A stretch of 64,000 nt of DNA from Guillardia theta CCMP2712 (taxonomy: Eukaryota; Protista; Cryptophyta), in contig NW_005434625.1 in assembly GCF_000315625.1 (NCBI RefSeq), positions 327,726 through 391,725 of the forward strand. The letters run 5' to 3'. This document shows positions 21,800-30,097 of the stretch, in pieces (the stretch's first letter is position 1; every line of letters begins with the position of its first letter). Below the pieces are notes generated by a model. It made no database searches. It had not been told where the DNA came from and worked only from the letters and a program-made list of their open reading frames with translations. The position numbers and the translations under genes are program-made.

Positions 21800-24795
21800 G
21801 CTATGTCCTCGTGGGTTGGTACAGCGGAACTAGTTTCCCTTCACGATGCCGAGCGATCACCGCCGAGACGCCTTCAGGTGTCAAACATCACACGTCAGCC
21901 AGCCACCGTGACAATCGAATGGAGAAGGAGACGAGGACAAGAAAAAAGTTCTCGACGGGGCAGCAAGCAAGCATCACCAGCAGAAACTTGATTGTTGTAC
22001 TCGTATCTTGAGATCTGTCAAGCTCGTCACAACAAGTGACCATGCAAATGTCAAACCTCCGAGCTGCCGTGGGTAGTAAAGAATCTCCACCTGATGAGAG
22101 TGAGCGATCAGCCTTATCTCGCCTCGTTTCGCGCAACCTGAAAGTCGAAGTCTTGAGCAGGCCATCGCTCTGTCGGGGCTCGAGCGACTCGCCGTTCTTC
22201 CCGCAAATCCGCTGCGGTCGTAGTCGTATCCGCACTATCGCGTTAGGAGGGAAAGTCCCGCTCTGTCCCATCCCTTCACCCCACAGGCAGAGGAAGCGAC
22301 AGCCTTACCTCGGGCTCGAGGACGAGCGAGCAGGTTGACTCGTCGTAGAGCGGGGCCTTGAGCCCTCCCGCGGGACTTTCGCTGCTGAGGTTCGTCTTGA
22401 CCGTCACCCACGTCCCCCCGTCAGCCTCCCGGAAGAGGGGCGTGTTGAAGCTGATGACGATCGGAGTGTTTCTGGGTCGGACCCGTGAGTACGGTCGGGG
22501 GTAGATGGCCGTCACTCGCAGAGGCAAGTAGCCAGCTGTGAAGAAATCCCAGCAGACGTCCCCCTCCACCCGCCTCCGCATGTTGGCCTGCCAGAGGGAG
22601 GACTGCGAGTTGATGGAGACCCGATAGTGAGAACTTGTTCGCAGCGGCTGGAGGGGAACGAACGTCAAAGTCCTGCCAGTCACCGTAAGGGTGCAGCCAT
22701 GGCAAGTAGCAAGGAAAGGAACCTGCTGGCCTCGTCCAACGTCACCTCCCCGGCCTCAGGTTTCGCGCTGAACTTTCTGCGAACCTGAACTGGGAGGTCA
22801 GCAGGATCTCATTTAGGGTCACCTCCAGGAGGGAGATAGGGAAGGAGGGAGAGGAGGGGAGGGGAGGGAGGGAGGGAGGGGAGGGAGGGAGGGAGGGGAG
22901 GGAGGGGGAGGAGGGAGGGAGGGAGGAGGGAGGAGGGAGGTAGGAGGGAGGGAGGTAGGAGGNNNNNNNNNNNNNNNNNNNNNNNNNNNNNNNNNNNNNN
23001 NNNNNNNNNNNNNNNNNNNNNNNNNNNNNNNNNNNNNNNNNNNNNNNNNNNNNNNNNNNNNNGAGACCTCATGCAGGAGGTCATATTCTCCTCTTCCTTC
23101 AACAGCAACGGAGAGAGGGAGGGGGAGGGAGAGAGGGAGGGAGGGAGGGAGGGAGGGGAAGGGAGAAAGCGAAGCGTACGAGTCAGACCTCGAAATCATT
23201 TTGCAGCAAGCTTCGGAGCAAAGGATATCCAGAGCTCCCGACCAACTTTTGGACCAAGTCGCTTGATGGATCCTTAAACTTGATCTATGACTTCCTTTCA
23301 GTTGCTGCCTCACGAGCTACAAGCTACAACCTTGATCTCTACGTTCTGAGAGACATTCTGAGCTGAGCTATCTGTTGGCGGATTTCATCAGGTTCAACCA
23401 GATTGGATGGATGGATACCTGGGAACATTTCCTCCACAAGAATTCCGAGGATCTTTGGAGGGGCCGGGGGCTGCGTAGAGCGCGTGTGACCAAAGGTCTG
23501 GACAAACGGACCATGGCAGAACCCACCAGAAGGATTAACATAGAAGGTTTCTGTATGTTGTACTCCCGGAGAGTGTGATGGTTCTGCAAAACGACACGTG
23601 AGTTCTAACACTGATGAGTGCGCACGGATCTGACCTGAAGAACTCTACCAGCAAACGCAAGCTGCAACTCCTCAGGCGCTGCAACCTGATGGGGTTGTCA
23701 ATCGTAACATGCAATGGACGCGGCAAGGTGTAAGCTCCAACCCCAGGGTACGTAGATAGTTTCTCCTTGACATCCTCGACGTAGTCATCTGCCTCACACC
23801 TGAGCGAGAAGATCCTGCTGCTGCGGCCAGATCTCAGCATCGTCTTCATCACAAGAACATTTGTTGTTGTGCCTGCTATCCCTGACATGAAGAGGCCTGC
23901 CCGATGGCATCGATTCGTTGAGAACGAGGTGAAGCACGCTGCAATCCTACGGAAACAGAAGTTGTCACACGCTGTTTGCAACATCAAAGGCAAGAATCAC
24001 TCTGACGGCAGCCTCTCGTAAGCTGCTTGCTCCATCCTACCACAGTGTTATATCGGCATGTCGTGGTGGGTTTCAGTATCCCTCACCAGGAGCTGCCCCT
24101 TGAAGATGAAGTGCTTGTGCTCGGGAGGGGCTCCTAGGGAGCAAGCACACCTGGCTGCGACATCCGAGATCGTGGAGTCTACGCCACCAGCAGCACAGTG
24201 AGGGATGCAGCAACAACAGTGAGGGATGCAGCAACAACAGTGAGGGATGCAGCAACAACAGTGAGGGATGCAGCAACAACAGTGAGGGATGCAGCAACAA
24301 CAGTGAGGGATGCAGCAACAACAGTGAGGGATGCAGCAACAACAGTGAGGGATGCAGCAACAACAGTGAGGGATGCAGCAACAACAGTGAGGGATGCAGC
24401 AACAACAGTGAGGGATGCAGCAACAACAGTGAGGGATGCAGCAACAACAGTGAGGGATGCAGCAACAACAGTGAGGGATGCAGCAACAACAGTGAGGGAT
24501 GCAGCAACAACAGTGAGGGATGCAGCAACAACAGTGAGGGATGCAGCAACAACAGTGAGGGATGCAGCAACAACAGTGAGGGATGCAGCAACAACAGTGA
24601 GGGATGCAGCAACAACAGTGAGGGATGCAGCAACAACAGTGAGGGATGCAGCAACAACAGTGAGGGATAACAGTGAGGGATGCAGCAACAACAGTGAGGG
24701 ATGCAGGAACAACGACATTGCCAACCTGAGTTGAACCGGAGAGGTTCTAGCTGACCTGACCAACTCACACATAATTTGATTTTTTCTGCATCCAT
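21800..24795 (-). CDS. Protein with two ubiquitin-like domains followed by two Big_5/SbsA-type Ig-like domains (multi-exon, spans a gap)
   Basis: UBL1: MDAEKIKLCVSWSGQLEPLRFNS|DSTISDVAARCACSLGAPPEHKHFIFKGQLL|DGASSLREAAVR|DCSVLHLVL. UBL2: IFSLRCEADDYVEDVKEKL...NPIRLQRL...LQNHHTLREYNIQKPSMLILLV. Ig-like parts: RTLTFVPLQPLRTSSHYRVSI...WDFFT and LRVTAIYPRP....PRNTPIVISFNTPL. The 3' end is approximate. Confidence 0.7.
22963..23062. other. Assembly gap (100 N)
   Basis: N run following a GGA/GGGA microsatellite. Confidence 1.
24195..24712. repeat. 21-bp minisatellite (ACAGTGAGGGATGCAGCAACA), about 22 perfect copies plus ~2 degenerate copies, intronic
   Basis: Tandem array visible directly. It lies between the minus-strand donor after ...RFNS and the acceptor before DSTISDV. 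Confidence 0.97.
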
Positions 24796-25270
24796 AGCGC
24801 CTGTGGCGATGTGTTGCGAGCTGCCGATTCTCAGCCAACTAGCTTGAAGCCGCAAGTGAATCTCGCATCAGGGATCGACGACTGAGATCCTCTGTGAGCA
24901 TGACCGGGTTTGACGGTGTCGGCCTTCGGAATCATACAGGATCAGCCAGCTCAGGCCCTTCTTTCTCCTTCCTCTCTCCCTCTCCCTCCCTTCCTCACTC
25001 CTCTCTGCCTCTCCGCCCTCTCCCTTCTCCTCTCTGCCTCTCCCTCCCTTCTCCTCTTCCGCTTCCTCCCTGACTTCCTGTCGCCGGGGTCTTCAATGCA
25101 TCGTTAGCCTGAAATCCTACCCCTACCCCCAGATTCTCAGTGTCATCTTCACCCTACCCCTCAATTGATACTAACAAGGTCTGTACAAGACGGGTGATGA
25201 CACTACCCACCACCACAACGTACATTCTCGGTTTATAAACAGTGGGGGACCACATCTAATAGATTCCGGT

Positions 25271-25344
25271 GCCGTGGTGGCGCAGTTGGTAGTCGCGTTG
25301 GTCTCATAATCCAAAGGTCATGGGTTCGATCCCCATCCGCGGCA
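25271..25344 (+). tRNA. tRNA-Met(CAT), elongator type
   Basis: Acceptor stem GCCGTGG/CCGCGGC plus A; D arm with AGTTGGTA; anticodon loop CT-CAT-AA; T arm ATGGG-TTCGATC-CCCAT. The G1:C72 pair and the TTC T-loop argue against an initiator tRNA. Confidence 0.93.
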
Positions 25345-25574
25345 ATGAGAAACGCCTGGGTCTTTATTTTTACCAGATGAATTGGCTTGGCTTGACGATG
25401 GCATGGACGGAACTCAAGGACGGCACACCTGACGGCACACACATGAAACGCCTGGCTGTTTATCAGCATCTAGTTTTTTGATGGATCAGACTACAATCAT
25501 GGCTGAAGCTAAGCCTACGGTAAGGGAACGTACGTGCAACCGTTCGTATCCCTGCAGTGCGGTGGCGACCTCAC

Positions 25575-28500
25575 TCATCCAGTGACGGCTCCTCTGCCCA
25601 CAAGCAAACTCTTGTAAACTGTTGGCAGAGCATCCTCCCTCAGCTGGGCCCCTCCACATATAAGGCTCCTCTCCTCCCGGTTGAAATCATGTGCCAGAAG
25701 AAAGTCGACCCCGTGACCCGTCCAAGCTGGCCTCGACCAGACCTTGACACTCCCATCTTCCGACCCTGTGGCGATACAACTCCCGTTCTGACCCCACGCT
25801 AAGTCCTGCCCGGCCAGCACTTGGTGTACCTCCCACGTCTCTGTGTCGATCAGTCTCACGCCCCCGTCACCAGACACGGACGTTGCGATTGTGCTCCCGT
25901 CCTGTGCCCACGCCACCCTCTCCACAGCTCCGTCGTGTCCACTGAGCACCTGCAAGCAGCTCTCCGTCTCCACATCCCACACTCGCACTGTCTTATCGAC
26001 TGAAGCCGAGGCAAGCCTCCGGCCGTCCTGCCCCCACGCTATGCTTGTTACATGATTTGTATGCCCCTCAAGCCCCTTGTGGCACCTGCCCGTATCCGCA
26101 TCCCACAACCGGACGATATGATCGTTGGATCCGGAGGCGATAGTCCTCCCATCCCACAGCAAACAGGTTACTGCCCCTTCATGACCCTCGAGCGTTAGGA
26201 TGCATTCCCCTGTCGCTGTATCCCACACTCGTACTGTGCTATCGTCAGATCCTGTAGCAAGCCTCCTTCTGTCTGGCCCCCACGCTATGCATCTTAGCCT
26301 CCTTCCATGTCCTTTGAGTACATGAATGCATCTTCCCGTCTCAAGATCCCAAACCCTCGCTGTGTCATCCCATGCTCCAGAAGCCAGCCTTTGTTCGTCC
26401 TGCTCCAAGGCAACGCACGTCACCTCATCGGTATGACCACTCAGCACATGCTGGCACCTCCCTGACTCCACATTCCACACTCGCGCGGTCCAATCACTTG
26501 ATCCCGAGACGACCGTCTTCCCGTCTTGCCCCCATGCAACCATCTTTACTCCTCCTGTGTGTCCAACGAGAATCTGTCGACACTCCCCTGTCTCCACGTC
26601 CCACAATCTTATGGTCTTGTCTTCCGACCCCGAAGCGATCATCCTTCCTTGAGTCCCCCACACAAGGCACGTCACCCTCCCTTCGTGTCCCTCCAGCCGC
26701 TGTAGTCGTTGGCCGGTATCCACGTCCATCTCCCGCATCACTCCATCTTTAAACAGAGCCGTCAAGCATGAGCCCTGCAGTGTGAAAGTGATACAGGATG
26801 CTTTGTGCTGGAGCACCTGGCGACACTCCCCGGTCTCTATCTCCCACAACCGCACTGTCTTATCATGTGGCGATCCAGAGGCTATAATCCTGCCGTCCTG
26901 TGCCCACACGATGCTCTCTATGCTCTCTCTATGTCCCATGAGAACTTGTTGTAGCTCCCAGGTCTCGGCGTTCCATACTCGTATGGTCTTGTCTTCTGAT
27001 GCAGAAGCCAGCGATCTCCCATCCCACGACCATATCACACATGTTACGTATTCCTCGTGCCCATGCTTCCCTTCAAGCAACCGGCACAGCCTCCCACTGT
27101 CTACTTCCCACACTTGTATCGCCTTGTCTAAGGACCCGGAGGCGATCATCTTTCCGTCCGGTCTCCATGCTACGCTCGTCACCCCGCCTTCGACCTGCTC
27201 TTTCAGCTCCAAGCGGACCTCCCCCGTCTCCACATTCCATACCCAAACTTTTTTCTCGTTTGACGCGGCAGCGAGCATCTTTCCGTCAGGCCCCAGAGAA
27301 ACGGAATTGATGGTTTCCCCATGTCCAGCCAGCACTTGGCAGGCTTCTTCAGTCCAAGGCTCCTTCCATACTCTTGTTGTGCCGTTCTGTGACACAGCAG
27401 CCAGCATCCTTCCATCCTGACCCCACGATATGCTTCTTATCATTGTCTCGTGTCCTGGGAGCTCTTTCCAACACTTCCCTGTCTCTACACACCACAATCG
27501 TACTAGCCCATTTTTTGACCCAGTGGCGACCAATCTGCTGTCTTTGCTGAAGCTTCCGCACATCAATTTATTTGGACATGATATTTTCGGGTGGTCCTTT
27601 TCCCCGAAGTAGATTCCCTCATGACACGCTCCCTCCAGCATCGCCTTCTCCAAGTACGCATGGCTGGCGTTGGCTTCAGATAGATTCGCGTCCTGCAAGT
27701 TTGTGTGGTGAAAAATGCCGTTCCGCAGCATAGCACCCTGCATCCGCGCCCCCCTCAGGTCCAGCCCAGAGAGACTAACCCCAGCAGCTACTAGGATCGA
27801 TGCTGCATTCGCCGAGGCCCATCCCAAGTCCTCTCGAGCTTGCGGCAATAGATCCAGAAGCTTCTTCCTGTACCTGCTGTCGAACCTCACAACATCTGCG
27901 TGCTCCCTAATGGTCTCCGCGTCCTCACGCAAGTTCCGAATCCTCAGGGTCTCCGGAGCCTCGCCGGCCATTGGGTTTTGCTCCTGAAGCTCCTCAAACG
28001 TTCTCTGGGCCAGGAAGAAGCTACGAAATGAGTCATGTACGAAGCTGATCTCCAGTGCCTCTTTCTTGTTCTGCTTTCGCCTCGTCACCTGGGCTAGGCA
28101 TCCTACCAGCAGCCAGTACCCCAGCTCGTCTTCGAGTTTGCTTGTTCGAGCCGATATGCTGAAGGGATAATCGGACAAGAAGCCGTGCCGCCCTACCTCG
28201 AGTAGAAGATGGCGCTTGTCCTCTTTGAGCAACCTCAAGCTCAGAAACTGCGCTGCTTCGAAGAACTTCTCGACGATGTTCTCATCGTCCATGTCCGCTG
28301 TGCGGATCTTGTCTGCAAGTTGTGGCATCTTCTTGATCCTTTTCCACTCTCTCCAGTACATCTCCTTTGCATACTCGTTGTAGATGTCATGCCGAGTCAT
28401 TCTGCCCTTTCGGTCTTGTCCATTTTGTCCATCAAATTTAGGAAGCGCCAGCAGCGTCACCTTCAACAAGAACGGGGTCGTGACGATGTGCCGGAGGTCT

Positions 28501-29846
28501 GAGCTGGCTGTCAATGCCTCCGTGTACTGCTGCTCACTCCATCCGCCAGCATTCTCTGGCTTCGAAACATGATATCTGATGTATTGACTCACCGGAGTGC
28601 GGTCTGACAAGCTCAACGGGCACAGCCAGGCAACTTGCAAGCGCCCGCTTGCTCCTTCCCCAGGCAGCCAAAACAGTCGCTCCGAGGATCCATCGCTCTT
28701 GAGGTAGTCGCTCCGACAGGTGACGATTGCCTTGAAGTCTTTACATCCTAATAGTTCTCCATGGATTTCCTCGATGACGTTCCTTCTCTCGCCCATCTCA
28801 TCATACCCATCCAGCACTACCAAGAAGGATTTGTTGCGGACGAAGTACCTGAAATCTTCATCCAAAAGCTCTGGTATTTTCAGATATTCTCCCTCTTCTT
28901 TCAAGAACTCCCTGACGCTTTTGCAACTCGGAAGGTGCAGATACACTGGATACAACTTGCTCTCCTCCCAGCTGCTACCTTGCCTTAAGATGTGCTTTTT
29001 CACTAGCGTTGATTTGCCAGCTCCAGCTTTGCCAAGCAGAAGAAGGACTTTCTTTTTCTGGCTCTGTAGAAAGTCTCTAATAAGCTGCTCGGAGTTGATC
29101 TTCGTGGTGACGCTGACAAGATCGGGATCTCTGTCGGCGCAACCTGTCTCAATAAAGCAGTCCTCGACCCCCTCCAAACTGATCGTTCTGTCTGCCTTCT
29201 CTATGATGGAGCGCAAATGCTTTGGCAGGCGATTGAACAGGTACTCTCGGTCCTTCTCTCGTTTGACCTCTCCTGTTGCGGGCTCTATCTTTCCGGCAAA
29301 GTCATACTGATGGCTGTAGCACCAGGCGTTGATTATCATGTTCGCCTTACGTGGCGCGAAAGGTCTTGACTGCATGGTCACGCAGTGGATGGAGATTGGG
29401 TGGTCCTTCCCGAGCTGTTCAACAGTTTTACAATCTTCCATCAAGAACTCGATCGAGTCTCTCCCATCTGTCCGTAGCTGGCCGTTGGGGTCGCCATGAA
29501 CACCTGTGTTGATGTGAATGGCTTGCTTGAGTTTTAACATGGCTTCCACGATCTCCTTCACATCATCTGCGTTGACTGGTTCTGAGCTTTCCCAGAGTAT
29601 CTGAGCATTCTTAGCGTTTGGGTTCGGAAGCGCGTGTGCGAAGAAGCGGCGGAGTTCAGACTGTTGGAGGACACATCGCCCAGAGGCGTTGGTTTCAACT
29701 CCGAGGATACCGGCGTCTGTTTGTAGATCATACCATGGTCCAGTTTGCAACCAGTCAGGGTGAGCTTGACGGAGAGGAGGGAGGGCATCAGGTCGGGTCC
29801 TCTGCCTGTCATGCTCGCTCTCTGACGTCGCTTCCCTCGTCCCCAT
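25575..29846 (-). CDS. Intronless NLR-like STAND protein: N-terminal predicted H/D/C peptidase, NACHT NTPase, pentapeptide repeats, ~15 WD40 repeats
   Basis: Single ORF of ~1423 aa from ATG 29846. Walker A LLLLGKAGAGKST; Walker B FLVVLDGYDE; sensor IVTCR; TPFLL; ISFVHDSFRSFFLA; SANAASILVAAGVSLSGLDLRGARMQGAMLRNG pentapeptides; GH...W.QDG...ASGS.D.TVRVWD repeats; C-terminal LLVGRGA. Confidence 0.93.
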   Translation of the reverse strand: MGTREATSESEHDRQRTRPDALPPLRQAHPDWLQTGPWYDLQTDAGILGVETNASGRCVLQQSELRRFFAHALPNPNAKNAQILWESSEPVNADDVKEIVEAMLKLKQAIHINTGVHGDPNGQLRTDGRDSIEFLMEDCKTVEQLGKDHPISIHCVTMQSRPFAPRKANMIINAWCYSHQYDFAGKIEPATGEVKREKDREYLFNRLPKHLRSIIEKADRTISLEGVEDCFIETGCADRDPDLVSVTTKINSEQLIRDFLQSQKKKVLLLLGKAGAGKSTLVKKHILRQGSSWEESKLYPVYLHLPSCKSVREFLKEEGEYLKIPELLDEDFRYFVRNKSFLVVLDGYDEMGERRNVIEEIHGELLGCKDFKAIVTCRSDYLKSDGSSERLFWLPGEGASGRLQVAWLCPLSLSDRTPVSQYIRYHVSKPENAGGWSEQQYTEALTASSDLRHIVTTPFLLKVTLLALPKFDGQNGQDRKGRMTRHDIYNEYAKEMYWREWKRIKKMPQLADKIRTADMDDENIVEKFFEAAQFLSLRLLKEDKRHLLLEVGRHGFLSDYPFSISARTSKLEDELGYWLLVGCLAQVTRRKQNKKEALEISFVHDSFRSFFLAQRTFEELQEQNPMAGEAPETLRIRNLREDAETIREHADVVRFDSRYRKKLLDLLPQAREDLGWASANAASILVAAGVSLSGLDLRGARMQGAMLRNGIFHHTNLQDANLSEANASHAYLEKAMLEGACHEGIYFGEKDHPKISCPNKLMCGSFSKDSRLVATGSKNGLVRLWCVETGKCWKELPGHETMIRSISWGQDGRMLAAVSQNGTTRVWKEPWTEEACQVLAGHGETINSVSLGPDGKMLAAASNEKKVWVWNVETGEVRLELKEQVEGGVTSVAWRPDGKMIASGSLDKAIQVWEVDSGRLCRLLEGKHGHEEYVTCVIWSWDGRSLASASEDKTIRVWNAETWELQQVLMGHRESIESIVWAQDGRIIASGSPHDKTVRLWEIETGECRQVLQHKASCITFTLQGSCLTALFKDGVMREMDVDTGQRLQRLEGHEGRVTCLVWGTQGRMIASGSEDKTIRLWDVETGECRQILVGHTGGVKMVAWGQDGKTVVSGSSDWTARVWNVESGRCQHVLSGHTDEVTCVALEQDEQRLASGAWDDTARVWDLETGRCIHVLKGHGRRLRCIAWGPDRRRLATGSDDSTVRVWDTATGECILTLEGHEGAVTCLLWDGRTIASGSNDHIVRLWDADTGRCHKGLEGHTNHVTSIAWGQDGRRLASASVDKTVRVWDVETESCLQVLSGHDGAVERVAWAQDGSTIATSVSGDGGVRLIDTETWEVHQVLAGQDLAWGQNGSCIATGSEDGSVKVWSRPAWTGHGVDFLLAHDFNREERSLICGGAQLREDALPTVYKSLLVGRGAVTG

Positions 29847-30097
29847 CGCTTTTCCCACCAGACCGCAGCGAAGCCGCGACCTTTTGGTGGTAACGGAATC
29901 AGATAACGGTTAGCCTCCGCAGCCGCTGTTGAGGCGGGTTTGTTGGAAGAACATTTTGATTTGGCGATCAAACTTTGATGGGCCCCCGTTGAGCAGGCGG
30001 TTCAAGCGCGAGAAGGGGAGGCTGAGGTGGAGCCTGGCACAAGCTCTGTCGATGCGACCGACGGATATGAGGGAGAGAAGAGGAGAGAGCTGAGAGC

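Follow-up and report, generated by a model that had tools for sequence, protein, structure and literature searches.

The Tox-HDC domain (PF15656) was defined from examples that included an APSE phage toxin and a protein of Coxiella (Zhang et al. 2012, PMC3482391). Its founding description gives three motifs (SGxH, a conserved D or N, and a C that never varies) and predicts a three-layer alpha/beta Rossmannoid fold in which the H, the D/N, and the C each stand where one of three consecutive strands ends. The fold is compared there with caspases and flavodoxin-like folds; the activity named (thiol peptidase or transglutaminase) is a prediction, founding members included (PMC3482391). The classical toxins (the APSE YD-repeat, Coxiella QpH1 RHS, and Klebsiella RHS proteins) are secreted RHS/YD-repeat proteins that carry the domain as their C-terminal warhead. 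Receptors of the NLR-like STAND type have been described from animals, plants, fungi, and bacteria, but much less from free-living algae and other protists. Among them, the bacterial bNACHT and Avs/AVAST systems follow a tripartite plan of an N-terminal enzymatic effector, a STAND NTPase, and a C-terminal repeat sensor. Here, we describe a gene in a stretch of 64,000 nucleotides (nt) from the cryptophyte alga Guillardia theta CCMP2712 (contig NW_005434625.1, positions 327,726 to 391,725; termed the window herein) that encodes a protein with this same plan, in which a predicted relative of Tox-HDC stands at the N terminus and is fused in cis to a NACHT-type NTPase.

The protein has an NLR-like STAND layout: an N-terminal effector-type domain is followed by an NTPase of the NACHT clade, pentapeptide repeats, and about 14 C-terminal WD40 repeats. 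The open reading frame (ORF) is uninterrupted, and the gene is intronless. It lies on the minus strand and reads ...KQAIHINTGVHGDPNG...SIEFLMEDCK...ANMIINAWCYSHQ..., so that the three family motifs (SGxH, the conserved D/N, and the invariant C) are all present. The original prediction, made from the sequence alone, had named an NLR-like STAND architecture and had placed IHINTGVHG, EFLMED, and IINAWCYS, together with the codons of a candidate His and Cys, N-terminal to the NACHT domain; the architecture was found as described, and the motifs and codons lie exactly where they had been put. The features are as follows (window coordinates; residue numbers count from an in-frame GTG at 29858, the first codon of the mechanical ORF 25575-29858 of 1427 codons).

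25575..29846, minus strand: coding sequence of the HDC-NACHT-pentapeptide-WD40 protein (ATG at 29846, stop at 25575-25577, 1423 amino acids [aa], without internal stop or gap)
25451..29864, minus strand: probable unspliced mRNA (one 4414-nt contig of sequencing run X1, with 0 differences, 0 gaps, and no joints)
29253..29771, minus strand: entire folded N-terminal unit, residues ~30-202, made up of a short beta extension and the Tox-HDC-like alpha/beta core
29310..29603, minus strand: Tox-HDC-superfamily core, residues 86-183 (PF15656 match over profile positions 3-113 of 130; hhalign; model with a predicted local distance difference test score [pLDDT] of 89.8)
29496..29498, minus strand: codon of His121 (in IHINTGVHG, where NTGxHG is the family [S/T]GxH motif; 3 residues after a beta strand)
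29433..29435, minus strand: codon of Asp142 (in EFLMED, where F..ED is the family D/N motif; in the initial turns of a helix in each model)
29319..29321, minus strand: codon of Cys180 (in IINAWCYS, the family invariant Cys; 3 residues after a beta strand)
28707..29048, minus strand: NACHT-type P-loop NTPase core, residues 271-384 (Pfam matches plus Walker motifs)
29010-29033, minus strand: Walker A, GKAGAGKS, residues 276-283
28797-28826, minus strand: Walker B, FLVVLDGYDE, residues 345-354
27819..28706, minus strand: NACHT-associated region, residues 385-680 (without a Pfam call; 31-44% identity among paralogs)
27579..27806, minus strand: pentapeptide-repeat linker, residues ~685-760 (Pfam Pentapeptide, E 1.3e-10)
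25731..27569, minus strand: WD40 array, residues 764-1376, 14 recognized repeats (Pfam WD40, E 7.1e-129, in 14 stretches)

The Met encoded at 29846 is the probable start of the receptor protein, and no signal peptide was visible by eye. The NTPase core passed the Pfam cut-off of NPHP3_N (28.7 bits, cut-off 24.8) and fell just under that of NACHT (25.3 bits, cut-off 26.7), for which relatives score up to E 1.4e-22. Walker A and Walker B were intact in all 11 copies inspected and satisfy the NACHT-type patterns GxxxxGK[ST] and hhhhD[GAS]x[DE]E. Residues 385-680 presumably form the helical and winged-helix domains. Weak NCBIfam matches of the HetL and Qnr types were seen at residues 691-773, and the WD40 array, which contains enough repeats for two propellers, is presumed to be the sensor of the receptor.

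A Tox-HDC-like identity of the N-terminal domain had been proposed in the original prediction and is supported by several comparisons. The Pfam check suggested there gave a divided result: with the limit relaxed to E ≤ 10, Tox-HDC was still the sole family to match the N-terminal segment, at a score under the gathering cut-off of 21 bits, while Peptidase_C14 and CHAT, which had been suggested alongside, had no match. A search of the genome with the domain returned 11 full copies and additional fragments, and Tox-HDC was the top Pfam match in 7 of the 11 paralogs (best E 8.9e-5); the His, Asp, and Cys were invariant in all 11, although these copies are only 39-47% identical overall. A profile built from the 11 paralog core domains was then searched against 1.84 billion representative proteins and yielded 162 matches at E ≤ 1e-3, 63 of them at E ≤ 1e-10. 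Among the best 150 of the 162 homologs, and counting only sequences with a residue at the column, His was retained in 136 of 144, Asp in 119 of 148, and Cys in 137 of 143, and this conservation of the three-residue pattern across paralogs and homologs indicates that it did not arise by chance. Relatives found with the profile passed the Tox-HDC cut-off themselves (P0135 with 57.3 bits, P0009 with 29.7 bits, and P0050 with 29.3 bits), and Tox-HDC was detected at E ≤ 0.01 in 19 of the 102 profile matches that were scanned. In addition, a newer, precomputed Pfam version assigns Tox-HDC to the ortholog from Hanusia phi (P0003), as well as to P0033 and P0034.

The link to the founding members of the family was provided by P0135, the domain of which led by tblastn to a YD-repeat toxin of Hamiltonella phage APSE-11, an RHS protein of the Coxiella burnetii QpH1 plasmid family, and a Klebsiella RHS protein. 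When the 11 paralogs were compared by hhalign with the domains of P0135, APSE-11, Klebsiella, and Coxiella, a probability of 97.2% was obtained (E 4.5e-11, 101 columns), with NTGxHG aligned to SGTHG, F..ED to F..ED, and NAWCYS to FCYS. The toxins thus carry a homologous domain with the motifs [S/T]GxHG, F..ED, and [FW]C[YW]S in register. Based on the paralog conservation, the profile matches passing the cut-off, the tblastn matches to founders, and the hhalign result, we regard homology to Tox-HDC as established, and these sequence comparisons make it very probable that the N-terminal domain is a divergent relative of Tox-HDC, despite the window sequence by itself scoring below the curated cut-off. 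The cryptophyte copies form a subfamily with extra conserved His, Asn, Ser, and Trp residues, and the additional His, Asn, and Ser residues are absent from the classical toxins.

Two AlphaFold models of the domain were generated, one from the 11-paralog alignment (m08ad90e90696; 222 aa, pLDDT 78.6, with values over 90 in much of the core) and one from an alignment of 112 homologs (mb099dc99572b; 141 aa, pLDDT 89.8, predicted template modeling score 0.85). In the former, pLDDT values were 87-95 over most of residues 11-100, 76-95 beyond these, and below 60 after about residue 180. Paralog conservation in the N-terminal unit starts at about residue 35 in the alignment of 11 copies. Both models show a beta-alpha-beta sandwich, and the structural neighbors were all generic Rossmann-like folds, which suggests a Rossmann-like alpha/beta sandwich, the general type of fold predicted for the family. 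In the models, His121 and Cys180 each lie 3 residues past a beta strand, with a conserved strand (ISIHC) between the two, and Asp142 falls within a helix. A homodimer prediction for the Tox-HDC-like domain gave a score of 0.01, which speaks neither for nor against binding.

The gene belongs to a group of NLR-like STAND proteins that has expanded specifically in cryptophytes. In the genome (87.1 Mb, 669 contigs), the Tox-HDC domain and, independently, the NACHT plus helical region (residues 251-680) found the same 12 loci with this architecture, located on 12 scaffolds; 10 are intact and 2 are frame broken. The order HDC, NACHT, helical region, pentapeptide repeats, and WD40 repeats was kept in 10 of 10 paralogs compared. 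Identity to the window copy amounted to 45-57% for HDC, 38-55% for NACHT, 31-44% for the helical region, 46-75% for the pentapeptide region, and 23-45% for WD40, which is the most divergent part. Since the open frames of the intact copies also range from 1110 to 2120 aa, the presumed sensor is the most variable part of the protein. A search for paralogs with swapped N-terminal effectors had been suggested, and no such exchange was found: no paralog with a different N-terminal domain was detected at E ≤ 1e-5, the NACHT search returning only loci that also carry the Tox-HDC domain. Orthologs are present in the cryptophyte Hanusia phi, and in a tree made by a quick method, with modest support, the Hanusia sequences interleave with the Guillardia paralogs, which argues for an expansion that predates the split of the two. 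Tandem Repeats Finder detected no tandem array with the WD40 period at 25500-27700, only a 9-bp two-copy repeat.

Of the two frame-broken copies, the one at C44:470000-477700 needs at least 4 frame changes to be read through, and the one at C111:166400-173500 leaves the frame within the pentapeptide region and keeps only a few WD-like repeats; both are candidate pseudogenes, with introns or assembly errors as alternative explanations. Two small fragments of the family were also observed (on C90 and C78).

The 4414-nt contig of run X1 starts 18 nt upstream of the ATG and finishes 124 nt past the stop codon, and a DNA run (X3) extends past both of its ends, which are discrete. The receptor gene is probably transcribed as one unspliced mRNA of ∼4.4 kb with an 18-nt leader and a trailer of ∼124 nt, the RNA nature of run X1 being a guess. 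At 29309-29342 of the window, run X1 additionally contains contigs of 31-33 nt with one mismatch each and a high depth of 44-340, stacked exactly over the codons for ANMIINAWCYS. These short contigs are presumably words common to the transcripts of the paralogs, which suggests that several members of the family are expressed.

Outside the cryptophytes, the domain was found in a range of proteins. In the quick tree, a long and supported branch lies between the toxin domains of APSE, Coxiella, Klebsiella, and P0135 and a 118-sequence clade containing the cryptophyte ones, and the domain started within 260 residues of the N terminus in 107 of 111 near-full-length matches. The cryptophyte domain belongs to a separate, "N-terminal" Tox-HDC subfamily, which stands ahead of NACHT, NB-ARC, or further conflict-type modules in bacteria and uncultured organisms. 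A Walker A motif followed the domain after 40-113 residues (mostly 70-90) in 17 of the 49 proteins with at least 250 downstream residues. According to Pfam, the downstream partners are NACHT or NB-ARC, followed by ankyrin, TPR, leucine-rich, HEAT, or WD40 repeats; other partners are ankyrin repeats alone, a metallopeptidase plus an RZ-type zinc finger, and an AIG1-like GTPase. The combinations Tox-HDC + NACHT + ANK and Tox-HDC + NB-ARC + TPR were found on bacterial-looking contigs, and two STAND fusions adjoin genes for IS66 or a group II intron maturase. The bacterial carriers include metagenome-assembled genomes (MAGs) of Simkaniaceae and other Chlamydiota, one of Bdellovibrionota, and one of a gammaproteobacterium; Chlamydiota MAGs are among the sources of the forms with leucine-rich repeats, HEAT repeats, or NB-ARC. 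Given these bacterial and other fusions, the Tox-HDC-STAND fusion is a recurrent architecture and not unique to the alga.

Several of these proteins deserve separate mention. N-terminal-type Tox-HDC proteins of Chlamydiota MAGs (L045, L046, and L049) include one of 1211 aa with leucine-rich repeats and one of 1095 aa with an NB-ARC-like P-loop, and might be either eukaryote-like NLR mimics or defense genes of obligate intracellular bacteria. Protein P0050, which is present on 6 metagenome contigs, carries a PAD_porph deiminase upstream of a C-terminal Tox-HDC domain. Unusual fusions were seen among P0056 and P0127, namely, Tox-HDC with a matrixin/astacin-like metallopeptidase and an RZ-type zinc finger and Tox-HDC with an AIG1/GIMAP-like GTPase (on a transcript-sized contig).

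The fusion is already visible to automated Pfam annotation. In the literature searched, "Tox-HDC" was named only in the 2012 founding paper and "PF15656" nowhere, and the pairing of Tox-HDC with NACHT/WD40 is undescribed there; two large Aravind-lab surveys of NTP-dependent conflict systems do not mention Tox-HDC, and in the bNACHT/Avs literature searched, which concerns bacteria whereas the host here is a eukaryotic alga, it is not named as an effector. Papers that name Guillardia together with NACHT do not describe such genes, and no description was found of NLR or NB-ARC proteins in Guillardia or of a cryptophyte NLR repertoire, in agreement with the original prediction, which had known of no such architecture in cryptophytes.

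Similarity of the window protein to the bacterial NLR-related systems was marginal at the level of hidden Markov models: Avs4 and EruA matched at E 0.012, and the PADLOC candidate models PDC-S60 and PDC-M16A matched at E 1e-4 to 8e-4, all PADLOC matches being either repeat driven or marginal. The same NACHT + pentapeptide + WD40 chassis is found in Mortierellomycotina fungi and in their Mycoavidus/Glomeribacter endosymbionts, and for residues 235-760, the nearest relatives beyond cryptophytes were proteins of the Mortierella group and these endosymbionts (E 1e-29 to 1e-15, 22-33% identity). Such relatives in fungi and bacterial endosymbionts fit a repeated bacterial origin of eukaryotic NACHT modules, which eukaryotes acquired from bacteria several times (bioRxiv 10.1101/2022.07.19.500537). 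That the chassis is common to many proteins of Mortierellomycotina and Burkholderia-related endosymbionts (P0151-P0203) suggests, as a separate matter, gene exchange between host and symbiont.

A precomputed Tox-HDC call was present only in the Hanusia ortholog P0003 among the 55 chassis matches. TIR_2, protein-kinase, SAM, or metallophosphoesterase families appear, irrespective of position, in the precomputed Pfam lists of some further chassis relatives, whose origin is different or unknown, and these lists tentatively suggest that one switch-plus-sensor chassis takes different effectors in different lineages. The fungal HET-E/NWD NLRs likewise combine an in-cis effector, a NACHT domain, and a WD40 sensor and show lineage-specific expansion. 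They differ from the window protein in their effectors, which are HET, PNP_UDP, patatin, and others instead of Tox-HDC, and in their WD40 arrays, since fungal recognition WD40 repeats are near identical in DNA with hypervariable positions (PMC1805685) and the window protein has no homogenized array.

We propose that the gene encodes an NLR-like STAND receptor, one of a cryptophyte expansion, with a Tox-HDC effector, in which ligand-triggered oligomerization of NACHT would switch on a Cys-His-Asp thiol enzyme that brings about defense or cell death; we assign this reading a rough probability of 0.6. The model draws on Avs/bNACHT proteins, fungal NLRs, and the apoptosome as analogs: the WD40 array would capture a non-self or danger ligand, upon which the NACHT module would exchange nucleotide and oligomerize. 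The clustered Tox-HDC domains might then become active as Cys-His-Asp thiol enzymes, with peptidase or a related activity of the amidase/transglutaminase type, and damage proteins of the cell or of an invader, leading to defense or cell death. Apaf-1 apoptosomes and inflammasomes would share this logic of a WD40-sensed ligand, STAND oligomerization, and protease output. Apaf-1 differs in having NB-ARC and in recruiting a separate caspase via CARD, whereas the putative enzyme of the window protein is in the same chain and is not detectably a caspase. Judged by these analogies, an immune mechanism is plausible; peptidase activity, oligomerization-driven activation, and an immune role are what we infer for this receptor.

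The nature of the enzyme is the first matter on which other readings are conceivable. The domain could be a divergent clan CD peptidase (caspase, metacaspase, or CHAT-like), which would make the protein a caspase-like executioner fused to an apoptosome-like switch. This idea, also raised in the original prediction, draws on the resemblance of the caspase dyad to a His-Gly past one strand plus a Cys past a later strand, on the comparison of the predicted Tox-HDC fold to caspases and flavodoxin-like folds in the founding paper (PMC3482391), and on a language-model lead to DUF6642 clusters, some with CHAT, which scored 0.82-0.87, under the trust level, and was not used. It fared poorly in our searches. 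Peptidase_C14 and CHAT did not match the window protein in Pfam even at E ≤ 10, and four fold searches of the PDB with the two models (Foldseek and VIA-align) returned no chain of a caspase, gingipain, legumain, separase, or CHAT protein among the best 50 matches of each, a missing match being no proof that the folds differ. Furthermore, the conserved strand ISIHC intervenes between the His strand and the Cys strand. We therefore consider a clan CD peptidase very unlikely. A less radical departure would keep the architecture and the homology to Tox-HDC and assign the domain a different Cys/His-dependent chemistry on proteins or small molecules, for example that of a transglutaminase, a deamidase, or a transferase of acyl or other groups; to this we attach some weight, while considering it rather improbable.

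Other readings concern the role and the origin of the gene. Some eukaryotic NACHT-WD40 proteins, such as TEP1 and NWD1, are not classical immune receptors, and the WD40 repeats found here are ordinary and without recent concerted evolution, so that the protein might be a regulatory or scaffolding STAND NTPase of housekeeping signaling, with an N-terminal domain that is an adaptor or enzymatically inert. Against such a role stand the invariance of the putative catalytic residues in paralogs of such low overall identity, the lineage-specific expansion with its broken copies and highly variable sensor length, and the company kept by the domain, related as it is to toxins and to fusions with modules that typify conflict systems (NACHT/NB-ARC, AIG1-like GTPase, and RZ finger); we regard it as unlikely. 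It might also be asked whether this is a working algal gene at all, or a bacterial contaminant, a very recent transfer, or a dead pseudogene. The gene is intronless, its NACHT-pentapeptide-WD40 chassis is bacterial in style, and the nearest chassis relatives beyond cryptophytes include endosymbiotic bacteria. On the other hand, the 12 loci are spread over 12 nuclear scaffolds of 34 kb to 1.06 Mb, the G+C content of the receptor gene (0.542) matches that of its flanks (0.545 for the window), the frame of 1427 codons is open, and a transcript-like contig with discrete ends covers it. The paralogs are 39-61% identical, and together with the interleaved Hanusia sequences, this makes the expansion old. 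Bacterial contamination was thus rejected on the basis of the scaffolds, the G+C content, and the Hanusia orthologs, and the chance that the gene is not a working algal one seems negligible.

A number of points weigh against the receptor reading that we prefer. The window protein itself scored only 14.4-16.5 bits with PF15656 (E 0.043-0.0099), and the gathering cut-off was not reached. Both models put Asp142 into the initial turns of the intervening helix, whereas the founding paper predicted a strand end. Searches of PDB sequences with both profiles found no solved structure of a Tox-HDC relative, and the literature searched contained no report of a tested activity for any member, so that "thiol peptidase" goes back to the 2012 prediction. 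The ligand, the oligomerization, and the phenotype of the receptor are argued by analogy. The WD40 repeats visibly differ in sequence and length and lack the near-identical units with hypervariable positions of fungal recognition NLRs. Lastly, the RNA support consists of the one contig from a run with a guessed RNA label plus 14 raw reads of run X7, the sole certain RNA run; these are mostly partial, lie near the 3′ end of the receptor gene, and are too few to give strand, transcript ends, or expression level.

What is new here, relative to the literature searched, is an NLR-like STAND receptor whose type of effector had not been discussed before. The family, which comprises 12 loci, some of them broken, and varies in its WD40 sensor, is a candidate intracellular receptor repertoire for cryptophytes. 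Tox-HDC gains a context in turn: the warhead type of secreted bacterial toxins is coupled, in bacterial proteins as well as in a eukaryotic one, to an NTPase switch, a pairing that fits the theme of toxin domains and immune effectors being drawn from one pool. We also put forward, tentatively and with the odds somewhat against it, a broader proposal: the N-terminal Tox-HDC subfamily could be a trans-kingdom, proximity-activated Cys-His-Asp executioner mounted on STAND/NLR switches and other conflict proteins of bacteria (including Chlamydiota) and protists, with the cryptophyte family as a working immune or cell-death receptor repertoire. If true, this repertoire would be the first of its kind described for cryptophytes, and it would use a class of effector that is not known from the NLRs of animals, plants, or fungi or from characterized bacterial ones. 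Besides NLR evolution and algal immunity, the subject bears on the function of Tox-HDC. The domain is a tractable object for finding that function, as it is short (about 140-170 aa) and its candidate catalytic residues are clear.

Two further features were noted beside the receptor gene. A tRNA-Met (CAT) gene is located on the opposite strand (25270-25345, plus strand), ∼230 bp past the receptor stop codon and ∼105 bp past the end of the transcript-like contig. Farther away, at about 24198-24734 of the window, a long tandem array with a 21-bp period comprises ∼25 copies, and its frames are open in several phases, which read PSLLLLH, SLTVVAA, and RDAATTV.

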